A stretch of 51,103 nt of DNA. It comes from Girardia tigrina (taxonomy: Eukaryota). Shown here piece after piece: positions 2,739-46,608 of this stretch. Position 1 is the first letter of the stretch. The number at the start of each line of letters is the position of its first letter. The notes under the pieces were generated by a model. The model saw nothing but the letters and a program-made list of their open reading frames with translations, was not told where the DNA came from and ran no database searches. The translations under genes were made by a program, and so were the position numbers. The DNA lies in NCBI GenBank assembly GCA_001938485.1, contig MQRK01178639.1:1-51103 (forward strand), written 5' to 3'.

Positions 2739-4700
2739 AAATGTTTTTCGTTTTAAAAATTTATTGTGGATTTATTTTCTTTAAATAACTTTTATTTCAG
2801 AACAAATTTTAATTCCTAATTTATCTGTATAAATTGTAGAAATAATTCGTTAAATTCTGATTGTTGGTAAATAAAATTAATAATATTAAAAAAGGAATTA
2901 AATATAACTTTTAAAAGGAAATTAACAAATTTATTTTTAGAGAACATTTTTTATTTTTTACAATAATTATATTAACTCACTTCCTATAAATATTTATATC
3001 ACAAATTATTTAAACGACTTTTCACCAACTTCAAATTGTCAAAATAAATTTTATATATATAAATGAATTGTTTATTTTACTAAAATATTCTGTCTTCTTT
3101 TAAACACAAGTAAAATCTTTCTTACAAAATGACATAAAAATAAATTTTGTAGCATATTTTAAATTTACATTTATTTTTTACATAAACACAGCGATTATTT
3201 TTTTATTAATGTAATAAAATTGTACATTGTTAATCACTGGTCGAAGAGGGTACCCAATCGTCCATGCCGCATGTACAGCGGTCAACGACCACAGAATTCG
3301 TGATCGGAGGATGACGGTAAAACATTCGAAATATTTTTTCCTGAAATATATTTTAAAATAGCGTGTTTTTTTGTTTAAAATACATTTTTAATGATTAAAA
3401 TTTGTTTTATTAATATAATTTAACATTAAATAACTTTGAATACTAAAATGAAATTTTATCAATTTTTGATATTTTTCTGTGGTTTTTTATTTTCGCAAGT
3501 CGCTAATTCGAGGATTGTAAGAAATGATAATATAGAAGAAGGCAATGGCCAGCTGCAAGAGGATGTAAAAGAACGTTTTCCCAGACATGCGGAACATTTT
3601 ACTAACAAAGCGAAATTCGAATTGAAAGAAGCATTTCCAATCGATTTGTATACTGGAGTGAAGTTCAAACTGACGTATGACCCTGTGGACTATGATAACA
3701 AGGACGTTGTGTTTGTACTGGCCATCACGGAGAATAATGTATTAAAGTCGTCTGTCATTATCGATTCCACAAGGATCAAGTATGAATTCATTGATGAGAT
3801 ATTTACTGTCGTTGAAGAACAGCGATCTAAATTCTCTTTTGAAGGAAGATTACAATTTTCACGCATTTGTAATCACTCAATTTTCACGGTCTTTTATTTC
3901 TCGAAAAGAAATCCTTTAATTGAAGACAGATTCTATTTTGGTCGCCCCGATTATCGCGCTCCTCTGCGGGGCCTTTCGACAACTGACATAATATTTACTT
4001 ATTTCAGAGAGAACTTCCTTCAGTTCAAGGATTACACCATTTATAATAATCTCATCGAACTCGATGATTCTAATCTGTTTTCGAAAATTATTTTCTTAAT
4101 ACAAACGGACAGTGTGACACAAATAATAACTTTTATGCTCCTGGCCGCTGTTGTGGGACTATTTATCTTCATTATATCGTATTTCGCTTCACATTTTCGA
4201 CATAATAATAAGAAGAAGAAGAACGAGCAACAAGAAAATAAAGTTTAGTAAATCTTCAGCATTAAAGAAAATAAATTTTGTATATTTTATTAATAAAACC
4301 TTTTGAAATTGAATTCAGACTTTTGTATATTACTTTATCATTGTATCTATTTTTCAAAAATTAAAATTCATTTGCTATTTGTTCCATTTATAATAGGAAC
4401 ATTTACTCCTAATGGAAATGTAATTCCATGGGGTCAATTCCTTATTGTAGTAAAATCGAGGAAGTCCCGAAAAAGGCACAAAGGTTTTCGGTCGATCTGT
4501 TCAAACTTGGTATTCGTATATATTAAAATTCGTACACGTAATATTCTTTCTGTTTTTGTAACCACTTTTTTGATTGTAGAATGAAATTCAATATTTAAAG
4601 AGATTTAATGCGAATAATGCAAATTATTTAACAATTTAGTTTGTTTGAATATTGAGAATTTAGTAAATGCGGGTTAATTATTGATTTATCTGTGTGATAA
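2739..4700 (+). repeat. Left arm of a ~2 kb inverted duplication (partner ~12185-14127)
   Basis: 2739-3969 is the reverse complement of 12897-14127 with no difference seen by eye; 3970-~4700 is homologous to ~12185-12896 but diverged. Confidence 0.9.
3448..4248 (+). CDS. Orphan type I membrane protein, copy 1 (266 aa from the first ATG)
   Basis: Intact intronless ORF with signal peptide MKFYQFLIFFCGFLFSQVANS, a beta-rich ectodomain with an NHS sequon, TM segment IITFMLLAAVVGLFIFIISYF and basic tail RHNNKKKK. Two paralogues in the window have identical length. Confidence 0.85.
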   Translation: MKFYQFLIFFCGFLFSQVANSRIVRNDNIEEGNGQLQEDVKERFPRHAEHFTNKAKFELKEAFPIDLYTGVKFKLTYDPVDYDNKDVVFVLAITENNVLKSSVIIDSTRIKYEFIDEIFTVVEEQRSKFSFEGRLQFSRICNHSIFTVFYFSKRNPLIEDRFYFGRPDYRAPLRGLSTTDIIFTYFRENFLQFKDYTIYNNLIELDDSNLFSKIIFLIQTDSVTQIITFMLLAAVVGLFIFIISYFASHFRHNNKKKKNEQQENKV

Positions 4701-5774: not shown

Positions 5775-6610
5775 ATGGGCGTGCAGATATTCATTTTGAA
5801 TTTGAGTAGAGCCCATCAAGTAATCGACCAAATCGAAAGAAACTCTCCAACGGTAATCGCACATTTCGATATTAAAGACGGTCATTTGGTCAAGAAAATC
5901 TATTTAAAATCAAGTAAATTTATTGTCGACTCAGACAGTGATGATTCGCTCGTTGAATCGAGTTCCGATAAATCCGATCGGAAATTATCGAGAAATAACT
6001 CGAATGAAATCAAAGCATCTTCATCGATCCTTCCTGACAACCGAATCAAATCTCAATCAAATCAAATCGATAAACCGCGTCGGAGAACGATCAACGAATT
6101 TCTATTGGAAACGAGCACTATATGCGATTTGAAGTCGGCAATCGAACAATATTTGGCGACAAAATTGTGGAAGAGCTTGTTTCGAATTGTCGCTTTGATT
6201 CGCACACGGAGAAATTATGTAATTGTGATATTCAGTGCCAAGAAACTCGCCAACAGTTATCTACACTATATTCGTGTGATAGATGTGATTCCAGTTAATA
6301 ATGAAACTAAAATCAGTGACGATCTAACTCGATCCAGTAGCGGCGCGATACAACAAGTAGTCTTAAACGGTGAAGATTTTTCTCTAAATCAATTCGATTC
6401 GATTTCAAATCCAATTGATTCTCAACACCCAATCAATCAATCGAATATGAAAGAATATCATTTAAGCTTCAAGGAAAACGAAGTCTTTACAAGTTTGAAT
6501 TGGCTGCAAAAATTGAGGGATGAAGCGGAATCATCGTCCGAACAGTCATTCGAACCAAAATTATCAGAATCTAATTATGATTTACGAAAACCCTCTGCTG
6601 AGATACAACA
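5775..6610 (+). CDS. Orphan coding exon, Ser/Asn-rich, product unknown
   Basis: 279-codon open frame in very AT-rich DNA. It ends at CA|GTAAGT (6611), a consensus donor, so the TAA is probably intronic. Confidence 0.55.
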
Positions 6611-6639
6611 GTAAGTGCTTTGGTTTAATTTGGCAACGT

Positions 6640-12617: not shown

Positions 12618-13418
12618 CTAAACTTTATTTTCTTGTTGTTCGTTCTTCTTCTTATTATTATTATGTCGAAAATGTAAAGTGAAATACGATATAATGAAGA
12701 TAAATAGTCCCACAACAGCGACCACGACAAAAAAAGTAATAACTTGTACCTCGTCGTTTGTTTTAATCAGGAAAATAATTTTCGAAAACAGATTAGAATC
12801 ATCGAGTTCAATGAGAGTATTATAAATGGTGTAATCCTTGAACTGAAGGAAGTTCTTTCTGAAATAAGTAAATATTATGTCAGTTGTCGAAAGGCTCCGC
12901 AGAGGAGCGCGATAATCGGGGCGACCAAAATAGAATCTGTCTTCAATTAAAGGATTTCTTTTCGAGAAATAAAAGACCGTGAAAATTGAGTGATTACAAA
13001 TGCGTGAAAATTGTAATCTTCCTTCAAAAGAGAATTTAGATCGCTGTTCTTCAACGACAGTAAATATCTCATCAATGAATTCATACTTGATCCTTGTGGA
13101 ATCGATAATGACAGACGACTTTAATACATTATTCTCCGTGATGGCCAGTACAAACACAACGTCCTTGTTATCATAGTCCACAGGGTCATACGTCAGTTTG
13201 AACTTCACTCCAGTATACAAATCGATTGGAAATGCTTCTTTCAATTCGAATTTCGCTTTGTTAGTAAAATGTTCCGCATGTCTGGGAAAACGTTCTTTTA
13301 CATCCTCTTGCAGCTGGCCATTGCCTTCTTCTATATTATCATTTCTTACAATCCTCGAATTAGCGACTTGCGAAAATAAAAAACCACAGAAAAATATCAA
13401 AAATTGATAAAATTTCAT
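12618..13418 (-). CDS. Orphan type I membrane protein, copy 2
   Basis: Intact ORF, identical to copy 1 up to ...RAPLR, then ~16 aa differences. Confidence 0.85.
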   Translation of the reverse strand: MKFYQFLIFFCGFLFSQVANSRIVRNDNIEEGNGQLQEDVKERFPRHAEHFTNKAKFELKEAFPIDLYTGVKFKLTYDPVDYDNKDVVFVLAITENNVLKSSVIIDSTRIKYEFIDEIFTVVEEQRSKFSFEGRLQFSRICNHSIFTVFYFSKRNPLIEDRFYFGRPDYRAPLRSLSTTDIIFTYFRKNFLQFKDYTIYNTLIELDDSNLFSKIIFLIKTNDEVQVITFFVVVAVVGLFIFIISYFTLHFRHNNNKKKNEQQENKV

Positions 13419-17000: not shown

Positions 17001-17820
17001 GTATCCCGACAAAAACGCCAACGACAACAGCGCCCACCGACAAATGCGTCCCGAAAAAAGCGCTCATTTTTGAATTTTTATTTAAATTCTTAACAGAAGT
17101 AATTCTTAAATGAATTAATTTTGAGAGTCAAAAAAACTTTTTAACAAGAAAAATAGTTTAAAAATAGTACCAATGTTTCCATTAATCGTTTGGAATATGT
17201 TTGGTAGAGTTAATGGTGACTTGCCGTGTATAAATAATTCAGTTGAAGGTTGGCATAGAGCATTTCAACAAACCGTGAAGTACCACCATCTCTCAATTTT
17301 TAAAATAGTGGAACATTTTAAAAAAGAACAAAATCAAATAGAAATAGAATATGAACGTTTTCAAGTCGGATTTCGACAACCAGAAGCTTTGAAAAATAAA
17401 TATGTAAGCCTAAACAAACGGATAAAAAAATTAACAGAAAATTATATTATATATTATCTTAAGCGATAGTCGGATAATCTGGAAATATAATATAATATGT
17501 TATCTTTTTATTTTTTTTCATTGTATTACTTTTATTTTTAACATTTTGTTACTTTTGTTATTGTTGCAGTTTTGCAAGTCGTTAGGCGTTATTATTTATA
17601 TTATCATTATATTGCTTAAATCCCAAATAATATAAGTTTTACAAAATTATTTTTATAAAAATTCAAAAAGTCCTTTCATATTTGGGATTTAAACAATATA
17701 ATAATAGTAGAAATAATGATGCTTTCTGTTAAGAATTTAAACAAAACGTTTTACAAAAATTTAAAAAAGTGAGCGCTGTTGTCAGGATGCCTCCGTCGGT
17801 GAGCGCTGTTGCCGGGTCAC
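17001..17820 (+). mobile_element. Internally deleted MULE element with TIRs
   Basis: ORF 17173-17469 (WNMFGRVNGDLPCINNSVEGWH...) is a MULE C-terminus; termini are inverted arrays of gacaacagcgc motifs. Confidence 0.75.
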
Positions 17821-18042
17821 TCTATCATACACAGATGACTGATTCCATTTGATTTTCAGTGAGTTGCGTGAAAATGGAAGTCATGTTGGAACAGGTGTAG
17901 AACCCATTGCGACACCGTCTTTTAGAATGAACCATTTTAAAAACAGATACAATGAGTAATTAATATAAAAAGCTCTATACAATTTCAAAAAGTTTTATTA
18001 ATAACATATACAAAATTTATTTTCTTTAATATTGAAGAAATA

Positions 18043-18843
18043 CTAAACTTTATTTTCTTGTTGTTCGTTCTTCTTATTATTATTATTATGTCGAAATTGT
18101 AAAGCGCAATACAATATTATGAAAATAAGTGATCCAACAACAGCGGCCACGAGTAAACCAATGATTATTTGTGCCACAACGTTCGTTTTTATTATGAAAA
18201 TAATATGTTTAGACAGATGAAAATCATTTAGTTCGATTAATGTATTATAAATCGTGTAATCGTTGAACACAAACCAGAATTCTCTGAAATAATGTACGAT
18301 TATTGGAGTTGTTTGTGAGAAATAGAGAGGAAGGCCATTTGCCTCTGCACCCATAGTCAGTCTTGCTTCGCTTAAAGGATTTCGTTTCGAGAAATAAAAG
18401 ACCGTGAAAATTGAGTGATTACAAAAGTCTGTAAATTGTATTCTTCCTTCAAAGGAGAATTTAGACCGCTGTTCTTCAACGACAGTAAATATTGGATTAA
18501 AGGAGTGATACTTGATCCCCGTGGAATCAATAACGGCAGACGATTGCCATTTCTTATCCTCCGTGATGGCCAATACAAACACAAGGTCCTTGTTATCATA
18601 ATCCACAGGGTCATACGTCAGTTTGAACTTCACTTCATCGTTAACATCAACTGGAAATACTTCTTTCAATTCGAATTTCGCTTTGTTAGTAAAATGTTCC
18701 GCATGTCTGGGAAAACGTTGTTTTACATCCCCTTGCAGCTGGCCATTGCCTTCTTCTATATTAACAATACTTACAATGCTCGAATTAGCGACTTGTGAAA
18801 ATAAAAAACCACAGAAAAATATCAAAAATTGATAAAATTTCAT
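18043..18843 (-). CDS. Orphan type I membrane protein, copy 3 (divergent variant)
   Basis: Intact ORF of the same length, ~71% aa identity to copy 1 by manual count; upstream ~700 bp nearly identical to the other copies. Confidence 0.85.
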   Translation of the reverse strand: MKFYQFLIFFCGFLFSQVANSSIVSIVNIEEGNGQLQGDVKQRFPRHAEHFTNKAKFELKEVFPVDVNDEVKFKLTYDPVDYDNKDLVFVLAITEDKKWQSSAVIDSTGIKYHSFNPIFTVVEEQRSKFSFEGRIQFTDFCNHSIFTVFYFSKRNPLSEARLTMGAEANGLPLYFSQTTPIIVHYFREFWFVFNDYTIYNTLIELNDFHLSKHIIFIIKTNVVAQIIIGLLVAAVVGSLIFIILYCALQFRHNNNNKKNEQQENKV

Positions 18844-20989
18844 TTTAGTATTCAAAGTTATTTAATGGTAAATGATATTTATAAAACAAATTTTAATCAT
18901 TAAAAATATATTTTAAACAAAAAAACACGCTATTTTAAAATATATTTCAGGAAAAAATATTTCGAATGTTTTACCGTCATCCTCCGATCACAAATTCTGT
19001 GGTCGTTGACCGCTGTACATGCGGCATGGACGATTGGGTACCCTCTTCGACCAGTGATTAACAATGTACAATTTTATAACATAGAAAAATAATCGCTGTG
19101 TATATGTAAAAAATAAATGTAAATTTAAAATATGCTACAAAATTTATTTTTATGTCATTTTGTAAGAAAGATTTTACTTGTGTTTAAAAGAAGACAGAAT
19201 ATTTTATTAAAATAAACAATTCATTTATATATATAAAATTTATTTTGACAATTTGAAGTTGGTGAAAAGTCGTTTAAATAATTTGTGATATAAATATTTA
19301 TAAGAAGTGAGTTAATATAATTATTGTAAAAAATAAAAAATGTTCTCTAAAAATAAATTTGTTAATTTCCTTTTAAAAGTTATATTTAATTCATTTTTTT
19401 AATATTATTAATTTTATTTACCAACAATTCGAATTTAACGAATTATTTCTACAATTTATACAGATAAATTAGGAATTAAAATTTGTTCTGAAATAAAAGT
19501 TATTTAAAGAAAATAAATCCACAATAAATTTTTAAAACGAAAAACATTTTAAGTAAAAAGTAAACATAAAATTGTAAATTTCGTTTCAAAATTTAAAACT
19601 ATTTAAACTTTTTTGATATAAAATATGGCGAGAAAAACGTTTTTGGTTTTTATAAAATGAATTATATTAATTTAGTTTTATTTTTTTCAATAAAATTGCT
19701 TAACTTAAGATTTATTTTCAGACTTAAAAGATATTTTAATTAAAATAATCATTTATGTAATTTACTAAATGTTTTATTTGAGATAAAATGTTTTCAGATG
19801 TTTGATCCACTGAGAGAACGAAACATTTCCTCAATATCCGTGGACGATTTGCCTGTGTTAAATTTCAGAAATGTCTCAAATAATCATTTACAATAAATAC
19901 AAATATGAAAATTAAATTAAATTGTTAATTAACACTATTAAAAACAAATTATTAATTAATTATTCTTGATTATTTAAAACTACAGATATAATTAAAAAAA
20001 TAACTTTATAAATATATACTAAACTTATTTATACCTAATTTATATTACATATGATTTCAAAAAAAAATATATATTATAATATCACATTATTCATAATTTT
20101 TTTAATTTTTATCAAAAATATTTTTTATTGAATAATGAAAGATATAAAAATTAAAAATTGAACGACGATATTTAAAAATTACTTCAATAATTTTTGTAGT
20201 TCGTTTCTTTTTGTTCGTCGTGCTTTTATATTTCAATTATAATTTATTTAATTATATATTTTAAAAAGTATATTTTATGAAACAAACAATAAAATAATAT
20301 GTAAATGTTTTTTAATTTAATTTTTTTAGAAAACAAATAATTAAATTTTTAAAATATGTTACGACTAATTTTAATGATAAAATTTCTTAAAAAATATCGA
20401 AATAATCTAAAATTTTATTAAAAGAAATAAACAGCAATTTTATCAATTTTTGTTTTTTATCTGGTTTATTTTTTCACTATTAACTTAATTGAGACTATTG
20501 GGTTCGTGATTAAAATCCGAAGTCATTATTCGCAAACTTTATTTCTACTACAACTTTCACTACTCAAACAAATTTATGAGGAACAATATTTCAGTTACAT
20601 AAACCAGATTTTAAAATTCTAAATATAAATAATAATATCGATGTATATTTATGTGTATTATTTTATTCAATTTTGCATAAATCATATTTTGCTTTTGTTT
20701 TAATAATTTTTAAAATGTTTATTAATTGAAATATAAATTTAGATCTTTAAAAATATTTTAATGGACATGTCCTGTAAAAATTAAATTCCTAAATAATTTT
20801 TTCTTTAATTTTAAATTATTCAATTATAATTTTTTTTAATAAGACTTTCCGTGGACAAAAATTATAACTTTTTTTTATATAAAGTTATTTCATTTTAATG
20901 AGTAGAACATTATTTTTAATTTATCTCAAATATAAATACGATTTTTAATTTAAAAATATCAAAAATTTACAGTTCACCAAAAAAAACTC

Positions 20990-21359: not shown

Positions 21360-22900
21360 CACTACAGCTTCTCCTTTCTTTAGGAGATGTAATCGCCTAG
21401 GTAGTTTGATGGCTTGCGTTTTCGTTTTCCGTCTGTTCCGTTCTCCATGATTTTTTCATTGTCATTCCGGTGGTGCTCGGTCTTCCGATTGTCCACTTTT
21501 TCTTTCTCTGGTTCTGGTTTTTTCACGAGTCTCAGTTTTCTGATGTTTATCCATCTGCAACTACGTTGGTTTTTCCTTTTATATATGAGACCGTGAAGTT
21601 ATATGATAAGAGCTTTGTAGCCCGCCTTGAGATTCTGCATGGTACCGTACCATATCCATTAATGACAGTTAGTAGTTGTCGTAAGCTTTGGTGGTCTGTT
21701 CTTACTTGAAATTTTTGTCCATAAAGAAATTCATTCAATCTCATGATGCTCCAGATGACGCTGAGTGCTTCTTTTTCTGATGCTGAGTATTTTCGTTCTG
21801 AATCATGAATAGTTCTGCTGATAAAGTAGATTGGTTTTTCAATCCCTTCTTGGATTTGGCTTAATGCTGCTCCAAACCCGTTGTCTGAGGCATCTGTTGT
21901 CAGTATAGTTTCTGTTTTCATATCTGTAGAGTAGAATGCTAGTGGTACTGCCTCTGAGATTGCTTGTTTCAACTTCTGAAATATTGCTTCCATTTCTTCT
22001 GTCCACTGGAACGTTATTTCTCTTCTCGTTAAATTATACAGTTCGCGTGATAATTCCGCGAATCCTGGAATGTTTAATCTATAGCAACCGACCATTCCTA
22101 GAAATGATGCGAGTTGTTGTTTAGTCTTTGGAGTTTCTAAATTAATAATAGCTTTCAACGCTTCTGGCACTGGATGTACTCCTGTTTTATTAATTAATCT
22201 TCCCAAAAAGACTATTTCTTCTTTCCGGTATAACGATTTCTCTTAATTAATTGTCACTCTTTTCGATTTCAGCCGAAAGTCGTTTCATTCAGTCATTTAT
22301 CATGCTCCTCCATATTTTTCCCGTTTACTAATATATCATCTAGATAACAGACGATGCCTTCACGATGTCTGAGGATGTTCGTCATTACCCTCATGAATGC
22401 TGCTGGGGCATTTGCTAGACCAAATGGAAGTCGCTTGTATCTGAATGAACCTATGTGCGTAATGAAGGCTGTCTTCTATTCTGATGGGTAGTTGATGCTA
22501 TGCTGAAGTGAGATCCACTATTGAGAATATTTGAGCTCCGTACAGCTTGTTGTGAATTTCTTCCTGAGTGAGTATTGGAAACTGATCGATTTTGATGTGT
22601 TGGTTTAATCTTCCTGTAATCGACACACAGTCGAATTCCGTTCTTCTTGTTTGCTATTACTATTGGTGATACGAATACTGATGACTTAATTGGCTCGATG
22701 ACATCTTATGCAATCAGTTTTCTTATCTCTTCAGTGACAGGTGCCTCCAAATTAAAAGGAAGTCTTCTGACTTTTTGTATGATTGAATGGGGTACATCTT
22801 CTTTCAGTTGTATTTAGACTTCTTGGTTCGACATCGATATTAGTTTATCCGTCAAGAAATTCTTCTCCATTTCATCGTTATTGATTGCTGCAATTTCCGG
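21360..22900 (-). mobile_element. Ty3/gypsy pol fragment (RT-RNase H), frameshifted
   Basis: VCYLDDILV near 22340; LASFLGMVGCYR, TTDASDNGFGA, YSASEKEAL, VRTDHQSL and KGKTNVVAD motifs. Confidence 0.9.
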
Positions 22901-22912
22901 GGTAATAGCTAT

Positions 22913-25260
22913 TTGTAGGCTATTCACAGGCCACCCTCTCCCTATAGTTTTTAAAACGAGAACACAGAATTTTAAAATCCTTTATGTTTATGTTTTCATT
23001 CGACTTACAACCCTTTCTGTGTTCTGCAATATTACTCCCACCTACATTCCGACCATGTTCTTGGATTCTCTTACAAAGATGACGGGACGTCTCTCCAATG
23101 TATGTGACATTACACCCATTGCATGTAAATTTATATACGAGATCCGAACATAATCCAAATGGGGTTGGAGATTTATTACAAAACACATTTTGGATTTTAT
23201 ATGTTTGTGATATTATTTTTAAATTAAAGGCATTATTTAAACATTTCAAAATTGAACGTTGAAATTGACCAAATCCCTCTGAATATGGAATGCTTAAAAC
23301 GTATTTTAAAGTCGTTGAGTCTTCTTTAATCGGTTTATTAATAAATTTATCAATTGTTTCTTTGGTCAATTTCTCAATAATAGATTTTGAGTAACCATTT
23401 TTATTCAATAGTTTAGTGCATTGATTAATGCTATCAAAACTTTTTGTATAAGTTGATGATAATGACAAAGATCGAAAAATTAGTCCTCTAATCATATTAT
23501 ATTTGTATCGAGATTCACAAAAACTGTTTGGCGTTGTATATAACCCAGTATCAGTTTTCTTTCCGTGAATCTCAGTCTCTTTTCCTTTCAATCAGTAAAT
23601 CTAGGAAAGATAATTTACCATTATTCTCTGTTTCTGTTGTAAACTTAATATTTGAATGCAAAGAATTTAAGTATCCTAAAAATGAATCTATGTCAATTTG
23701 ATTATCGAAAATAAGAAAAATGTCATCAACATAGCGTTTATACGCTATAGGTTTTTGACCCGAAAACAAATCGATCTTATCTTCAATGCTTGATAAAAAT
23801 ATTTAAGCCAACTTTGGAGCTAAGAGAGAACACATTGCTACACCATCAACCTGCTTATACCACTCATTATTAAAAAGAAAATGAATATTAGAAGTGGCAA
23901 AACACAACAATTCACGAAATGCAACTTCATCGATAAAATGATGTTCACCAACATTATCTTTCCAAAGATTGCAACATAAATCAATCGTTTCCCTCAGAGG
24001 AACATTGGTGAAAAGACTAACAACATCAAAAGAAACCATAATTTCATTTTTGTTACTAATCTTATAATTTGAAATAAAGTCAACAAATTCAAAACTGTCT
24101 AAACAATTAGAACCCTTTTTCAGAAGGGGCTTTAATTTACCATCAAGATATTTCGCAACTTCATATTGAGATGTATTTACCATAATAATGTATTTTACCA
24201 TAATATGGGACGCAAAGGAATGCCATCTTTGTGAACTTTTGGAAGTCCATAAAGTTTAGCTGGTTGAGAACCAACTGCTTTTAAACTAATAGCTAAATTG
24301 CTATCAATATTTTTATTTTCAATTAAATTCGATTCAAATATTCATCATCTTTTACAGGTTGTAATTTTCCATCTTTCCTAAATTTACTAACTTTATCAAA
24401 TTGCGGACAATTTAAAACCTTTTCCATTTTATCAAAATAATCACAATTATTCATTACAACAAGTCCATTCCCTTTTTCAAATTTACATATCTTTACATTC
24501 TTTTTTGATAAATATTTTAAAATTATAAAAAATCTTTATTACATTGTTTTTTATTTTTTTTCCAAATATACATTCGTACTATTATTTAAAACGTGTTTAA
24601 AATATCAAAATCCACGCTTTTAAATAATTTAGCATGATTTAATGTCAAAATTGGAACATTGATTCAATTTTAGATTGAATTTTAAATTTATTTAACCTAC
24701 TTCTAATTCCATGTTCAGGACCAAATTTCAATAAATTGATCTCTTCATCTGATAATTCTACATTACTTAAATTTAAGACTGTATCTTTAACATTAAATTC
24801 AAAAACACCAAATAATTTTCTTAATGTTTTAAGTTTTTTGTTCTGTCTCAATTTTGTTACGAGAGATTTTATTAGCGTGATAATTAGAGACCATATTACA
24901 CCAATGAAGACCCAAATCACTACTTACATTATACAATGCAGATCTAACAATAGTTAGTCGTTTCACAATTTCTTTTCTTCGTTTCTTCTCTGTCTCCAGC
25001 ATTCTCCTTAGGATCTTCCGATGAATTTTGCGAATATCTTCTTTCTGTAAGCATTCATGTAATTTTCTTTTAAATATAAACGAGGGGATAATATTCTCGG
25101 CAACACAGGCAGCCAAAAAATATATTATTAATATATCCAATTCCTTTCTTCGTAACGAACAAACTAACTTCAGATATTTCTTGAATATACCGTCAAAATT
25201 AATTGTCATGAAAAATAAATGTCTATTTAAAAAATGGTGTATTTTTGTTTTTAATTAATA
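22913..25260 (-). mobile_element. Penelope-like retroelement (N-terminal domain, RT, GIY-YIG endonuclease), frameshifted
   Basis: YGLPKVHKDGIPLRP near 24220, SFDVVSLFTNVP, YKQVDGVAM, YKRYVDDIF, LSFLDLLI, and VYKFTCNGCNVTYIGETSRHLCKRIQEH. Confidence 0.92.
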
Positions 25261-35039: not shown

Positions 35040-35760
35040 GAATTAGGTTTGACAAATATGTTCATAGGTCATTTTCAATTACAGAGCATCATTGACTGAT
35101 GATTATTTTTGTTAGTGAGCGGTTTAAGTTTAGAGCGTTTAGAGCATTTAAGAAGAGTATTTGTAGAACTATAAGTAGTGCTAAATTAGTCTCTGTCACA
35201 TCCAAAGTTCAAAGTTTCCTCTCAAACAAATCGAAAACAGTTTGTGATTTGCAAGCTAATCTGGTATATAAATTTAATTGTCACGGGTGTCAAAACTCGT
35301 ACATCGGAAAGACAAATCGTCATCTCAAAACCCGGATTAGCGAGCACTCGCAAATGAGACGATCGAGTAAGGTTCTTGATCATTGGTTATGTTGTAAGAA
35401 TAGAAACTCATCCATTTCAAAAGATGAGTTTTCTGTTCTACAAAAGGGTTTTGATTCACATTACGAACGACAGTTTTGTAAATCTCTACTAGTAAGACAC
35501 TACAACCCATCAATTAACATTCAGAATGGGCAAAGTAAAGTTATTTCAATACTTAAAATTTTTAATTAAAATATTTTTGCCATTATTACCCAATAATATT
35601 TTAATAAATAATAATGTTTAATTTTTTGTTACCTTTTAAAGTAAATTATATCTATTAAAATTGTATTATTCAAACAATTCAATATTCATATACTAAACAT
35701 TCGAAAATTGTTGATGATGATGTATGTAAACATCGAAACATGTCCAATAATTATATAAAA
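35040..35760 (+). mobile_element. Penelope-like 3' fragment (GIY-YIG ORF 35099-35569 plus 3' region)
   Basis: LVYKFNCHGCQNSYIGKTNRHLKTRISEH...NPSINIQ. Confidence 0.88.
35707..35748 (+). ncRNA. Minimal type I hammerhead ribozyme motif (C3U variant) of a Penelope-like element
   Basis: attg-TTGATGA-t-gatgt(atgtaa)acatc-GAAA-catg-TC-caat: stem I, core, stem II, palindromic stem III and cleavage triplet. Confidence 0.7.
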
Positions 35761-40005: not shown

Positions 40006-43000
40006 TGTAAGAATTTTCCATCAATAATTAATAAATCGAAATTTCAAAAATTTATTCTTATTTAAAAAGTGCGCGTTTTTTGTTTATTTAAACAAAAATC
40101 ATCAAGAGACTTAATCTAGAATATTTTGGATCCATTATTATAATATTTGGGATAATACTCCTTTTTGATAACACTGCTCCTATCATATCAAAAGAAGCAT
40201 CAGTGTCTAATATAAATTCTTACCCAAAATCAGGATAACAAAGTATTGGGGCCGATATTAGTGCTTCCTTTAGTTTTTAAATGCCACTGAGTGTGAATCT
40301 GACCAATGCACCATGTCTTTCGAACTTCCACACATTTCTTCCAATAGTTTTGATAGTTTTGAATAATTTGGTATAAATTTTCTATAATAATTACATAGTC
40401 CCAAGAAACTTCGCAATGTCTTTATACATTTTGGTTGTTCGAATTCCACTATCAATTTTATTTTGTCTGGATCAGTCTTAATTCCGTCTCTCTTCACTAT
40501 ATGCCCCAAAAATCGTAGTTCTTTTTGAAAGAATCTACATTTTTCTGGATTTATTCTCAGTCCAGCCATTTCTATTCGTGCAAATAGTTTTTCCAACCTT
40601 TCCATGTGCTCCATTTCGATTTTCGAAAAAATCAAAATGTCGTCAAGATAGACCAGGGCTTCTTTCCACAATATCTCTTTCAAAACATCTCTCATAATCT
40701 TCTGAAATGTTGCTCGTGCAGCTGCAATGCCAAACAGCATTCTTGTGAAGCAATACTGTCCCATTTTAGTTGAAAATGCTGTTTTCAACTTTGAAGAATC
40801 TTCTAATTCTATTTGATAGTAGGCATTTCCCAGGTCAATGGAACTGAACCATTTCATTCCTCTTAATGAATCTAACATTTCCTCGATGTTTGGTATAGGA
40901 AAGGGCGGCCTCTCTGTCACTTGATTCACCAACCTGAAATTCAAACATAAACGAATTATCTTCTTTTCTTTTTTCCAAACACACACCATCGGTGTGTTCC
41001 ATGGTGATGAGCATTTCTCTATTATCCCGTGTCGTTCCAAATTACGAACAGCATCATCTATATGACTTTCTAAATGAGTTGGTTGTCTACGCGGTTTCTG
41101 TAGTATTGGTTGCCCTGATGTCTTAATTCAATGTTTTACTAATGATGTCTAACCAATGTCCCATCCTCCAGCCATAAAAATATTTTTAAATTTTTTAATA
41201 CATGTGTATAGTTTGTTATCCTCATTTAAATTTAATTTTTCTTTAGCATTTAGAATTCTCATTTCATCTGTATATTTCAACTTATCTATATACGGATTTA
41301 GAGCGCATACTTCTCTATCGGTTTCAATTATATTTTTATCATTTCCATTTATCCACCTCTAAATTCCATCTCAATTCCAACCCGATAGTTCTTATCAAGG
41401 TTATTCCGAAAATAATTGATGGGAACACTGTTTGTGAAACAAAATAACTGGTTCACTTTCTTATTTCTCCATACTATTATAATATTACATGTACCTAGTA
41501 TTTCCATTCCACTTCCGTTGGCACACACAACTGATGATATAACATTCCTATTTATTCTAACCTGTAATTTTTCAGCAATTTTCTTGTCCAGTACATTAAT
41601 ACGAGCTCCAGTGTCCAATAAACAATTCATCTCTATTCCGTCCATCCTAGCTTTAATACTGGGTCTTCCATTAAACTCCAAATAGTCTAGTTTCTCACTC
41701 GAACAAATTTCAAATTTAAATATCGCGGCATCTTGAACTATATTATCATTAAAATTTCCCGTATAGGGCATTATGTCTTTATAATAATTATTATTATTAT
41801 TATTAAAACTACATATACTATAATTATTATGCAATATATTATCATTAAAATTATTATAATTAAAATTACATTTACAGTTACTAATATTACAAATACTTAG
41901 ATCCAAAACATTCTTACTTTTTAATTTATGGCTCATATCATCTCTTGACTTGATAAAGCCTCCGAGTTTACCGATCTGTCGCCTTCGCAACTGTTTGTTT
42001 CATCCATTTCATCGATTCCAGCGACTGGTGCTTTGTATCGGTTTGGTTGCCATCTTTTCTGATCTCGGTGTACATTCAGTGCTTTTTGTTTGTAACACTG
42101 GTACCATAAATAACCTGGAGCGTTGCAATTTGAACATTTAAGGTACGGGCATTCTCTCCGAATATGTCCTTTACCTCGGCACCAATAACCTATTTTGGAA
42201 TTTTCTGGACATTCCAGTTTCATGTGTCCATGTTTCATATAATTAAAACATTCAAAAACTTTACCGTAGTGTCCACTATATTGTCGGTGAATCATTTGTT
42301 TGGGCGTTTCATTTCTTTTTGTGAAGTCTGGTCGAGACATCCTTGTCTGTTGGAATCTTGGCTGATTGACATAATTCGATCTATCCTCTAATATATTCGC
42401 GAACGTTTTCTGTCGTTGTATTTGGGCAATTTCGTTAATATAGACTTCGGCCTTAATATTTTTCATTTTCTCGATGACAGCTTTGATAGATTTGGGTGCT
42501 TTTGCTTCTTGTATGTAGATTTGTGTCTTCACTAACACATCTTCAACACAATGGGTCAAATAATATGTCATTAGCTCCTGTTTGTTTAATTTGTGTAACA
42601 GGATCTTGTCCACCATCTTCTCTATTCTGTTACGGTATACTGTTGCTGAATCTGTTCCTTTTCTTTAATTCAAAATTTCATTGAGGTCTTGTATTAACGA
42701 TGTCGGACGTTTAAACGCCTTCCGCAATCTGTCGGAGAAATCTGAGATTTTGAAATCCACCGCTTCGTAAGTGGTAAGCATATCTCTACTTATGAATGCC
42801 TTGACCATTGTCACTTGGATGGCTTCATTGATCTGGGCGACTTCAAAAAATCTTCAACTTCGGATATAAAGTCTTCAATATCCTACGATCCATCATAACT
42901 TTTTGGAGCCAGATTGCCTATAACACTGGCCGTGGTCGCCATATAAGAATTTTCCATCAATAATTAATAAATCGAAATTTCAAAAATTTATTCTTATTTA

Positions 43001-44950: not shown

Positions 44951-46608
44951 CACAGTGTAACACATTTTTTGCCCGGCTGTTAATTTATTCGTGTCCTATA
45001 CCATTTTGACACGCTGAAAATGAATTCGATAATCATTTTTTTCCTCCGTCCTTGGTTTGGCAAAAATTTGAAAAAATAAACATTTTTTGATATTTCATTT
45101 TTATTACAGCCATATTTCAAAGTTTTTGTCTAAATTCTTTTTCTGNNNNNNNNNNNNNNNNNNNNNNNNNNNNNNNNNNNNNNNNNNNNNNNNNNAAAAT
45201 TTGAAAAAATAAACATTTTTTGATATTTCATTTTTATTACAGCCATATTTCAAAGTTTTTGTCTAAATTCTTTTTCTGTCGGGCTTCTATTTTTCATTAG
45301 CAGATGTATATACCTCTCGTATATGTATATGTGGAGATTTCAAAATGTTGGGATTTTTGACTGGCTTACAAGGAGGATATACAAAGTATTGTTGCTTTTT
45401 ATGCTTGTGGGATAGTAGAGCTACGTCTAAACACTACGTNNNNNNNNNNNNNNNNNNNNNNNNNNNNNNNNNNNNNNNNNNNNNNNNNNNNNNACATACA
45501 CCCTTAGTCCAAAGGGAAAAGGTGCTATTGCCACCGCTTCACATCACTTTGGGTTTGATAAAGCAATTTATCAAAGCGCTGGACAGAGATGGCCCTACTC
45601 TTACGTTCATTCGAAGTATGTTTCCCAAAGTTACAGACGCGAAAATTAATGAGGGGGTCTTTATTGGCCCTCAGGTGAGGAAAATGCTTGCATCTCAAGA
45701 GCTCCAGCGCAAAATGAAGCCAGTGGAGAAGAGAGCTTGGTGTTCCTTGAGAAATGTTGTCAATGGATTTTTGGGAAACTCTAAAAGTGACAATTACAAA
45801 CAGCTGGTCAATGACTTACTGCTGCGGTACAAGCANNNNNNNNNNNNNNNNNNNNNNNNNNNNNNNNNNNNNNNNNNNNNNNNNNNNNNNNNNNNNNNNN
45901 NNNNNNNNNNNNNNNNNNNNNNNNNNNNNNNNNNNNNNNNNNNNNNNNNNAAAAGTCATGGAAGAGCGATATCAAGGACGCTGGAATGCTTCAATGATGG
46001 GCGATTATGTCTGGAATTTGATGAGAAGTGGTGAATCTCTTTACAACAGACAGTCTCGATCAAATGTGCCCTTTTGATTGACTTCATTGTTGTTCTTTCG
46101 AGATTGTCTCATTGTGTAGGACTGAATTATAATTCAATACTTTGTATCATTCACTTTGAATCATTCGCATTGTATCATTAAATTTTGTATCATTCACTTT
46201 TGTATCATTCACTTTGTATCATTCACTTTGTATCATTCACTTTGTATCATTCACTTTGTATCATTCGCTTTGTATCATTCACTTTGTATCATTCACTACT
46301 TTGTATCATTCACTACTTTCTATAATTATAATTATGTGTTCTCATCGACTCAGATTACTGTTTNNNNNNNNNNNNNNNNNNNNNNNNNNNNNNNNNNNNN
46401 NNNNNNNNNNNNNNNNNNNNNNNNNNNNNNNNNNNNNNNNNNNNNNNNNNNNNNNNNNNNNNNNNAGTTTATCATTTTTGATTTTCTGAAAAATGCCGGG
46501 ACACAGGTGAAAAACGGAGATCAAAATCGTGATCAGCGCATAAAAGTGACCCTATAAACATTGAAAACTTAAGCCGGGCAGACAAAAAAAAATTTTTGTT
46601 ACACAGTG
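44951..46608 (+). mobile_element. Chapaev3-type (CMC) DNA transposon, internally deleted
   Basis: tta|CACAGTGTAACA...GCCCGGCT and AGCCGGGC...TGTTACACAGTG|tta (3-bp TTA TSD); transposase GLQGGYTKYCCFLCLWDSRA, LLPPLHI and MEERYQGRW. Confidence 0.82.
46138..46320 (+). repeat. Minisatellite, 14-bp unit actttgtatcattc (about a dozen imperfect copies)
   Basis: Visible tandem repeat; it explains the HFVSFTLY ORFs. Confidence 0.92.

Follow-up and report, generated by a model that had tools for sequence, protein, structure and literature searches.

The window, meaning the whole 51,103-nucleotide stretch of DNA analysed here, belongs to a eukaryotic assembly of 1.43 Gb in 255,254 contigs. It is AT-rich (GC about 25-30%), and retroelement remains are abundant across it; the reverse transcriptases it encodes are those of LTR retroelements. 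Three copies of one gene lie within it, all intronless, and their coding sequences are taken from the list of open reading frames:

Positions 2739-3447, plus strand: tract upstream of copy 1, the counterpart of the 5' tract of copy 3 described below.
Positions 3448-4248, plus strand: coding sequence of copy 1, 266 codons, the reference for comparison.
Positions 12618-13418, minus strand: coding sequence of copy 2, 266 codons.
Positions 18043-18843, minus strand: coding sequence of copy 3, 266 codons and a stop codon, readable without an intron.
Positions 18103-18171, minus strand: predicted transmembrane helix of copy 3, about residues 225-247, a hydrophobic stretch that is also a helix in the structural model.

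Copies 2 and 3 stand in tandem with a spacing of about 5.4 kb, and copy 1 is inverted relative to both. The three encoded proteins share one layout, which runs from a signal peptide through an ectodomain of about 200 amino acids and a single hydrophobic helix to a short tail rich in Lys, Asn, and Glu. A search of its own genome returns copy 3 as an intact, in-frame match, and the family as a whole numbers about 8-10 loci. Four paralogues served as references: L004 and L005, which are close and unlinked to the window copies, and L012 and L016, which are distant.

Copies 1 and 3 were compared codon by codon over 801 bases. The coding alignment is gap-free, with net length unchanged, and 141 of the 801 nucleotides differ, distributed over codon positions 1, 2, and 3 as 54, 39, and 48. 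Replacement differences occur in 77 codons and silent differences only in 19, close to the figures of about 77 and 20 given in the initial annotation of this locus. Its report that some 700 bp of upstream DNA is almost identical agrees with our count of 13 mismatches in 705 aligned bases, plus two indels of 1 and 4 nt, and the variable blocks and invariant frameworks that it quoted are all present as listed. The clustering of changes into multi-base codon swaps that it described is likewise real: the dispersion of differences and the length of invariant runs were exceeded in none of 5000 permutations, and codons with zero, one, two, and three differences number 116, 51, 29, and 8, against 98, 82, 23, and 2 expected; unchanged codons and those hit two or three times are both over-represented.

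About four fifths of all sites are replacement sites, so a ratio of 77 to 19 is near the neutral one and is no sign of selection by itself. Pairwise estimates of dN/dS for copies 1 and 3 are 0.77 (NG86), 0.94 (YN00), and 0.80 (maximum likelihood). The real anomaly is not this count but the silent divergence of the gene, whose dS of 0.21-0.25 is ten times the divergence of the non-coding DNA directly upstream (0.018).

A maximum chi-square scan of the same alignment, with 500 permutations, finds a single sharp breakpoint at copy 1 coordinate 3632, about codon 62, where the chi-square of 146.7 was reached in none of the permutations. Divergence between copies 1 and 3 is 2.2% to the left of this point and 20.9% to the right. 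Silent and non-coding sites, followed from upstream of the gene to beyond its stop codon, give these values:

Upstream non-coding DNA: 0.018
Silent third positions, codons 1-64: 0.018 (1 of 56 differ)
Silent third positions, codons 65-151: 0.079
Silent third positions, codons 152-222: 0.143
Silent third positions, codons 223-266: 0.161
Non-coding DNA past the stop: 0.165

The jump in divergence is thus present at silent and non-coding sites too, and must be viewed as a matter of history rather than of selection on the protein. The 3' coding part of copy 3 has diverged no more than its own non-coding 3' flank. Copy 3 accordingly divides as follows:

Positions 18658-19549, minus strand: recently shared 5' tract, comprising 706 bp of upstream DNA and codons 1-62, about 98% identical to copies 1 and 2.
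Positions 18634-18660, minus strand: breakpoint zone, codons about 62-70, across which divergence passes from 2.2% to 20.9%.
Positions 17935-18657, minus strand: older 3' segment, comprising codons 63-266 and about 110 bp downstream, with silent divergence of 0.079-0.161 and downstream divergence of 0.165.

The upstream limit of the 5' tract is set by a masked run of N in the partner copies, and the tract may extend further. The first of the variable blocks, at residues 65-70, comes directly after the breakpoint zone. Copies 1 and 2 show a comparable switch at a different place. They are 100% identical over about 1.2 kb, covering the upstream DNA and about 175 codons, after which, in the membrane-proximal and transmembrane part, 17 of 50 bases mismatch, a switch that marks a second, more recent conversion boundary.

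A junction of this kind might also be produced in assembly, by the mis-joining of a 5' repeat of the copy 1 and copy 2 type to the 3' half of some other paralogue or haplotype. The assembly, at 255,254 contigs, is highly fragmented, short contigs end exactly at the point where copies 1 and 2 diverge, and several upstream positions show only the letters of copies 1 and 2 in contigs of both runs in which copy 3 was found. At the junction itself the copies share an identical 57-bp stretch, longer than short assembled contigs can phase, and together with those upstream letters this leaves a mis-join with a small probability. Set against it, the 5' tract of copy 3 carries differences of its own, in the 13 upstream substitutions and two indels already mentioned and in 8 of the first 62 codons. 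The 3' half is unique in the assembly, and other paralogues either have 5' ends of their own or lie on contigs that stop earlier, so the two halves of copy 3 can pair only with each other. Two public DNA runs yield assembled contigs with sequence specific to copy 3, including its largest variable block; in these runs it shows few allelic differences from the assembly, and the 3' half has single-copy-like depth. The divergent half was therefore not invented by this assembly. The sequence was present in no RNA run. Among raw reads from one run filed under another organism label (about 1% sampled), 28 were placed, none of them fitting in full. We consider a mis-join highly improbable.

On the two sides of the breakpoint copy 3 appears to take different positions. 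For codons 63-266 it falls outside a group in which copies 1 and 2 pair with each other and L004 pairs with L005, with 98% bootstrap support (92% from third positions alone), and a clade of the three copies in the window is rejected by the AU test (p=0.017). Long-branch effects could inflate this outgroup position. Upstream of the gene, where the comparison is made without an outgroup, copies 1 and 3 are separated by a distance of only 0.018, while copy 1 stands at 0.119 from L004 and 0.093 from L005. The 5' coding partition groups copy 3 with copies 1 and 2 at 60-72% support (AU p=0.26), but at 62 codons it is too short to fix copy 3, and the incongruence thus rests partly on distances.

The 77 residue differences between copies 1 and 3 were polarised with three distant paralogues. 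Copy 3 carries the outgroup state at 16 and copy 1 at 22, while 37 are unassignable. The changes have accumulated along the two lineages alike, with no concentration in that of copy 3. This result, together with the indel register of copy 3 described below, means that copy 3 is no hypermutated twin of copy 1, and that its 3' two-thirds represent an older lineage.

Drift of copy 3 as a pseudogene is rejected. When the 133 substitutions right of the breakpoint were placed at random, the frame was kept open in only 0.3% of trials (P=0.003), and the 70 residue changes observed in this part lie below the 87.5 +/- 4.2 obtained under random placement. The gene is still constrained, its reading frame is maintained, and there is no decay.

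Sequence searches for relatives of the encoded protein returned nothing. Pfam, including its V-set and other Ig families, gave no match above noise; a word-indexed search of 5.8 billion proteins found no relative; a family HMM had no match among 1.84 billion representative proteins; the best score in the ESM Atlas, 0.78, fell below the noise line; and exact-sequence look-ups returned nothing. Structural comparison, made with an AlphaFold model of the ectodomain (mean pLDDT 65, core 76-86), has Ig V-type domains as its top matches, among them antibody VH, myelin P0, CRIg, CD28, nectin, and sodium-channel beta subunits. VIA Z scores reach 8.2 over about 115-123 residues, Z 7-8 being a level that the tool calls typical of generic arrangements, and the best Foldseek E-value, again to V domains, is about 2e-3. 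In all three copies residue 141 is the only cysteine of the ectodomain, so the canonical B-F disulfide is absent, and a search for tryptophan among the columns invariant across the family found none. The family is thus an orphan one, small and restricted to its lineage; going by the predicted fold and the shared layout, its members are probably Ig-like, single-pass type I membrane proteins.

Nine strands make up the predicted beta-sandwich, at residues 56-59, 70-76, 88-95, 98-105, 110-112, 119-126, 130-137, 144-153, and 196-205. The invariant frameworks coincide with these predicted strands and with one invariant, Asp-rich loop at about residues 77-87. Four short variable blocks (residues 65-70, 96-100, 113-117, and 138-140) fall at predicted inter-strand loops, and longer ones follow toward the membrane. 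Those beyond the breakpoint zone have these positions in copy 3:

Positions 18544-18558, minus strand: residues 96-100, at the turn that joins predicted strand 88-95 to predicted strand 98-105.
Positions 18493-18507, minus strand: residues 113-117, in the loop that joins predicted strand 110-112 to predicted strand 119-126.
Positions 18424-18432, minus strand: variable triplet, residues 138-140, in the loop that joins predicted strand 130-137 to predicted strand 144-153.
Positions 18304-18372, minus strand: largest block, residues about 158-180, a low-confidence disordered linker or long loop with pLDDT below 50.
Positions 18205-18297, minus strand: two blocks, residues 183-194 and 206-213, best explained by compensating one-codon indels.

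In the triplet at residues 138-140, copy 3 shares T and D with unlinked paralogues, which makes copies 1 and 2 the derived ones there. Over the 24 codons 158-181, which take in the largest block, the ungapped identity of copies 1 and 3 is 49%, the chance level, and in this region 8 to 24 residues are missing from other paralogues. The alignment is improved by compensating one-codon indels at residues 189-192 and 208-213, and in both of the blocks concerned (183-194 and 206-213) copy 3 retains the register of the distant paralogues. The divergence had been described as free of indels, which holds for net length but not for these two stretches. Within the predicted transmembrane helix, residues 231, 232, and 234 show allelic replacements in a second DNA run.

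Several mechanisms that might have generated the blocks were tried and rejected. For a compensated frameshift, gapped alignment helps at residues 189-192 and 208-213, where the indels are of one codon, and only weakly elsewhere. In-place inversion of the blocks gives scores at or below those of shuffled controls. Templated hypermutation of the type carried out by diversity-generating retroelements finds no template, as self-comparison of the window recovers only the three gene copies and no template repeat, nor is the adenine-specific change of such systems seen, the changes per base being 0.16 for A, 0.32 for C, 0.29 for G, and 0.18 for T.

Another possible source is patchwork micro-conversion, in which the blocks of copy 3 would be short tracts copied from diverged family members or pseudogenes, in the manner of gene conversion at chicken immunoglobulin loci. 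Conversion is clearly active among these copies, the blocks have two or three changes per codon between flanks of 50-60 bp of perfect identity, and several block residues of copy 3 match distant paralogues. At the DNA level, however, the known paralogues differ from copy 3 in every block, and a search of the 1.43-Gb assembly for a donor, taking as query either the entire locus or the 78 bp of the largest block, recovered nothing beyond copy 3 and the known paralogues. To the right of the breakpoint, moreover, the frameworks have 8-16% silent divergence and are thus old as well, rather than recently shared. This origin seems to us quite improbable. The initial annotation had named segmental conversion as one of two possible causes of the pattern; recombination or conversion among the copies is indeed supported, by the breakpoint, by the silent sites, and by the apparent incongruence of trees and distances, but what it accounts for is the conserved 5' part, not the blocks.

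The other cause proposed there was strong diversifying selection, expected to show in a comparison of models M7 and M8. The corresponding reading is that the ectodomain presents a V-set-like recognition surface whose loops are driven by an arms race or by self/non-self recognition while the strands stay fixed, a reading compatible with a 5' conversion tract. We fitted a custom-written codon likelihood model of the Goldman-Yang type (F3x4) to codons 63-266, the stretch over which one history applies. Family-wide, M0 gives an omega of 0.78 over these codons. The comparison of M1a with M2a is significant (LRT 30.3, omega 5.1 at 16% of sites), as are those of M7 with M8 (LRT 36.1) and of M8a with M8 (LRT 29.4); across these tests omega is about 4.5-5 at 16-18% of sites, and the positive sites are mostly residues 158-180, 115-117, and 190-192. 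A weaker signal persists when copy 3 is left out (p=0.014) or the largest block is masked (p=0.02). The branch leading to copy 3 has an omega of 1.7 against a background of 0.71 (p=0.06), not significantly above 1, and the branch-site test on it gives an LRT of 33 with an omega of 96. In the young 5' tract, replacement differences exceed silent ones 2.5-fold in density (7/151 vs 14/740), although the contrast reaches only p=0.069. The location of the blocks in predicted loops and the structural resemblance to V-type domains of single-pass receptors also favour selection.

Counting methods give a different picture. By structure-defined class, over several pairs of sequences, pN/pS is 0.25-0.43 in strands and 0.7-1.2 in loops. 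In the largest block pS is 0.47 and pN 0.46, a ratio of about 1.0, with silent and replacement changes equally saturated. For loops and largest block the ratio comes to about 0.9-1.0, at or below about 1, with silent changes raised as much as replacements, and whole-gene dN/dS is at or below 1 as well. Judged by the yardstick of the initial annotation, which was a dN/dS of 1 or less in the blocks, the selection reading is not confirmed. Very large branch-site omegas are a known signature of multi-nucleotide or misaligned codons (bioRxiv 10.1101/165969; PMC11601313), and the value of 96 is typical of them. Standard site tests, furthermore, presume one synonymous rate across sites (bioRxiv 10.1101/174839). 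A model whose third class has omega fixed at 1 and a rate 3.9 times higher matches the fit of M2a (lnL -3016.76 vs -3017.70). Freeing both omega and the rate of this class yields an omega of 1.6, not significantly different from 1 (LRT 0.98, p=0.32); the result is unchanged when five close sequences are used. M2a and M8 are thus significant only under a uniform synonymous rate, and omega above 1 is lost once the fast class may have a higher rate, so positive selection on the blocks is not demonstrated. Recombination among the copies breaks the single-tree assumption of such tests, and the family, at about 8-10 loci, is small. On balance we regard selection on a recognition surface as the main cause of the blocks as rather unlikely, while some real diversifying selection on the loops may make a modest contribution.

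The predicted fold bears on the same question. A CDR-like pattern had suggested that the variable residues might map to one surface. They do map to predicted loops, but strand alternation in the low-confidence model would put all four short variable loops together at one end of the sandwich, with the Asp-rich loop and the long variable loop at the other. A more specific proposal is that the family represents an unrecognised, germline-encoded, V-set-like variable receptor, its loops, including a long CDR3-like one exchanged almost entirely between copies, diversifying under selection; conversion recurring from upstream would then homogenise the promoter, the signal peptide, and the N-terminal part. 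We think it improbable that the evidence assembled here reflects such a receptor.

Copy 3 is probably a chimeric paralogue made by interlocus conversion or crossover, in which the blocks mark uneven constraint across the fold and near-neutral loops. An older paralogue would have had its promoter region and first 62 or so codons overwritten with sequence of the copy 1 and copy 2 type, which would account for a 5' part about 98% identical to both. The likely mechanism is gene conversion between loci, or else an unequal crossover of neighbouring copies. From about codon 63 to some 110 bp beyond the stop, the gene would have kept its older divergence, which at silent and non-coding sites is about 15%. 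Within that segment, purifying selection would hold the beta-strands and the one Asp-rich loop, while the inter-strand loops and the disordered, length-variable linker would change at about the neutral rate, small compensating indels included. A chimera of this kind explains the pattern of an identical promoter with a very different protein with no need for antibody-like diversifying selection. The locus is also a cautionary case, in that a pattern which passes both M7/M8 and branch-site tests appears to be due largely to a breakpoint, unconstrained loops, and multi-base or indel changes.

Three kinds of known system invite comparison. The FREPs of snails and the 185/333 proteins of sea urchins are fast-evolving, restricted families with reported loop-focused diversification. 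Like them, the present genes form an orphan family with a high family-wide omega of 0.78, clustered copies, conversion, and variable loops; unlike them, they occupy about 8-10 loci only, and positive selection is not robustly shown. The family is a modest lead for studies of surface or recognition proteins in this animal lineage. Ig V-set proteins such as myelin P0, CRIg/VSIG4, CD28, and the sodium-channel beta subunits share with it the succession of signal peptide, beta-sandwich, transmembrane helix, and short tail, and, so far as the model predicts, the concentration of variability in loops. The family differs from them in having no sequence or Pfam match, one ectodomain cysteine, and a model with a mean pLDDT of 65.

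A third parallel is with chimeras produced by conversion or unequal crossover, which are known in tandem clusters of globin, opsin, and pheromone-protein genes (reviewed for Caenorhabditis paralogues in PMC3966223). Here, the partner tract runs into masked stretches of N, in which respect the locus differs from those cases. In common with them, it passes abruptly from near-identity to old divergence inside the gene, with the flank and 5' part homogenised and the 3' part not; its trees appear to depend on the part of the gene examined; and the pair formed by copies 1 and 2 has a second tract with another end point. The repeated 5' anchoring of these tracts, which reach about codon 175 between copies 1 and 2 and about codon 62 in copy 3, hints at a conversion hotspot upstream. 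The event is of an ordinary kind, in an otherwise uncharacterised orphan gene family.

Among the 266-codon paralogues, c1 and c2 lie in opposite orientations as a pair, in which positions 2739-3969 and 14127-12897 of the window are 100% identical over about 1.2 kb. This identical stretch takes in upstream DNA and approximately 175 codons, after which c1 and c2 abruptly differ at 17 of 50 positions, in the membrane-proximal and transmembrane part. The short contigs L006 and L007 both stop exactly at this divergence point. The identity of c1 and c2 reflects either another conversion tract, younger than the first, or the collapse of a repeat during assembly.

For the third paralogue, c3, a second public run carries a distinct allele. 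Three of its replacements (L231F, V232L, and A234V; 18143-18153) are packed into a four-codon stretch inside the transmembrane helix, and a fourth, F131Y, is located in a framework strand. The allele also has a 3-bp in-frame deletion in the run of Asn codons in the tail (18074), and only one silent change was seen (T108).

A distant family paralogue, given by its coordinates on other sequences, and further features of the window are as follows.

Distant family paralogue: L020 3-950, reverse; L050 991-2046, forward; L049 1219-1848, reverse
5775-6614, forward: 279-residue Ser-rich ORF between c1 and c2
17036-17839: very high-copy repeat directly downstream of c3, recognized by contig depth
17173-17469: 98-residue ORF inside that repeat
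21547-22206 and 40270-42616, reverse: LTR-retroelement remains (RNase H, reverse transcriptase, aspartyl protease, gag-like ORF)
22920-23591, reverse, and 35099-35569, forward: two ORFs with a common Cys-rich motif
45345-46034, forward: transposase-like ORF broken by several masked N runs

The distant paralogue runs from signal peptide through a long His/Gln/Asp/Asn-rich hexapeptide repeat to the beta-sandwich domain, and lacks the long variable linker entirely. Homology of c3 to the other copies stops just short of the high-copy repeat, where summed contig depth reaches 24,000-75,000, versus about 100-400 in flanking DNA (two runs). Neither the 98-residue ORF nor the Ser-rich ORF, a putative gene only, has a match in Pfam.

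The retroelement remains include RNase H (E-value 1e-27), reverse transcriptase (3e-30), an aspartyl protease, and a gag-like ORF with a zinc knuckle. Within the window, 22923-23145 matches 26782-26563 at 89%. Neither Cys-rich ORF has a Pfam match at an E-value of 0.001 or below; their shared motif resembles the GIY-YIG nuclease of Penelope-like elements.
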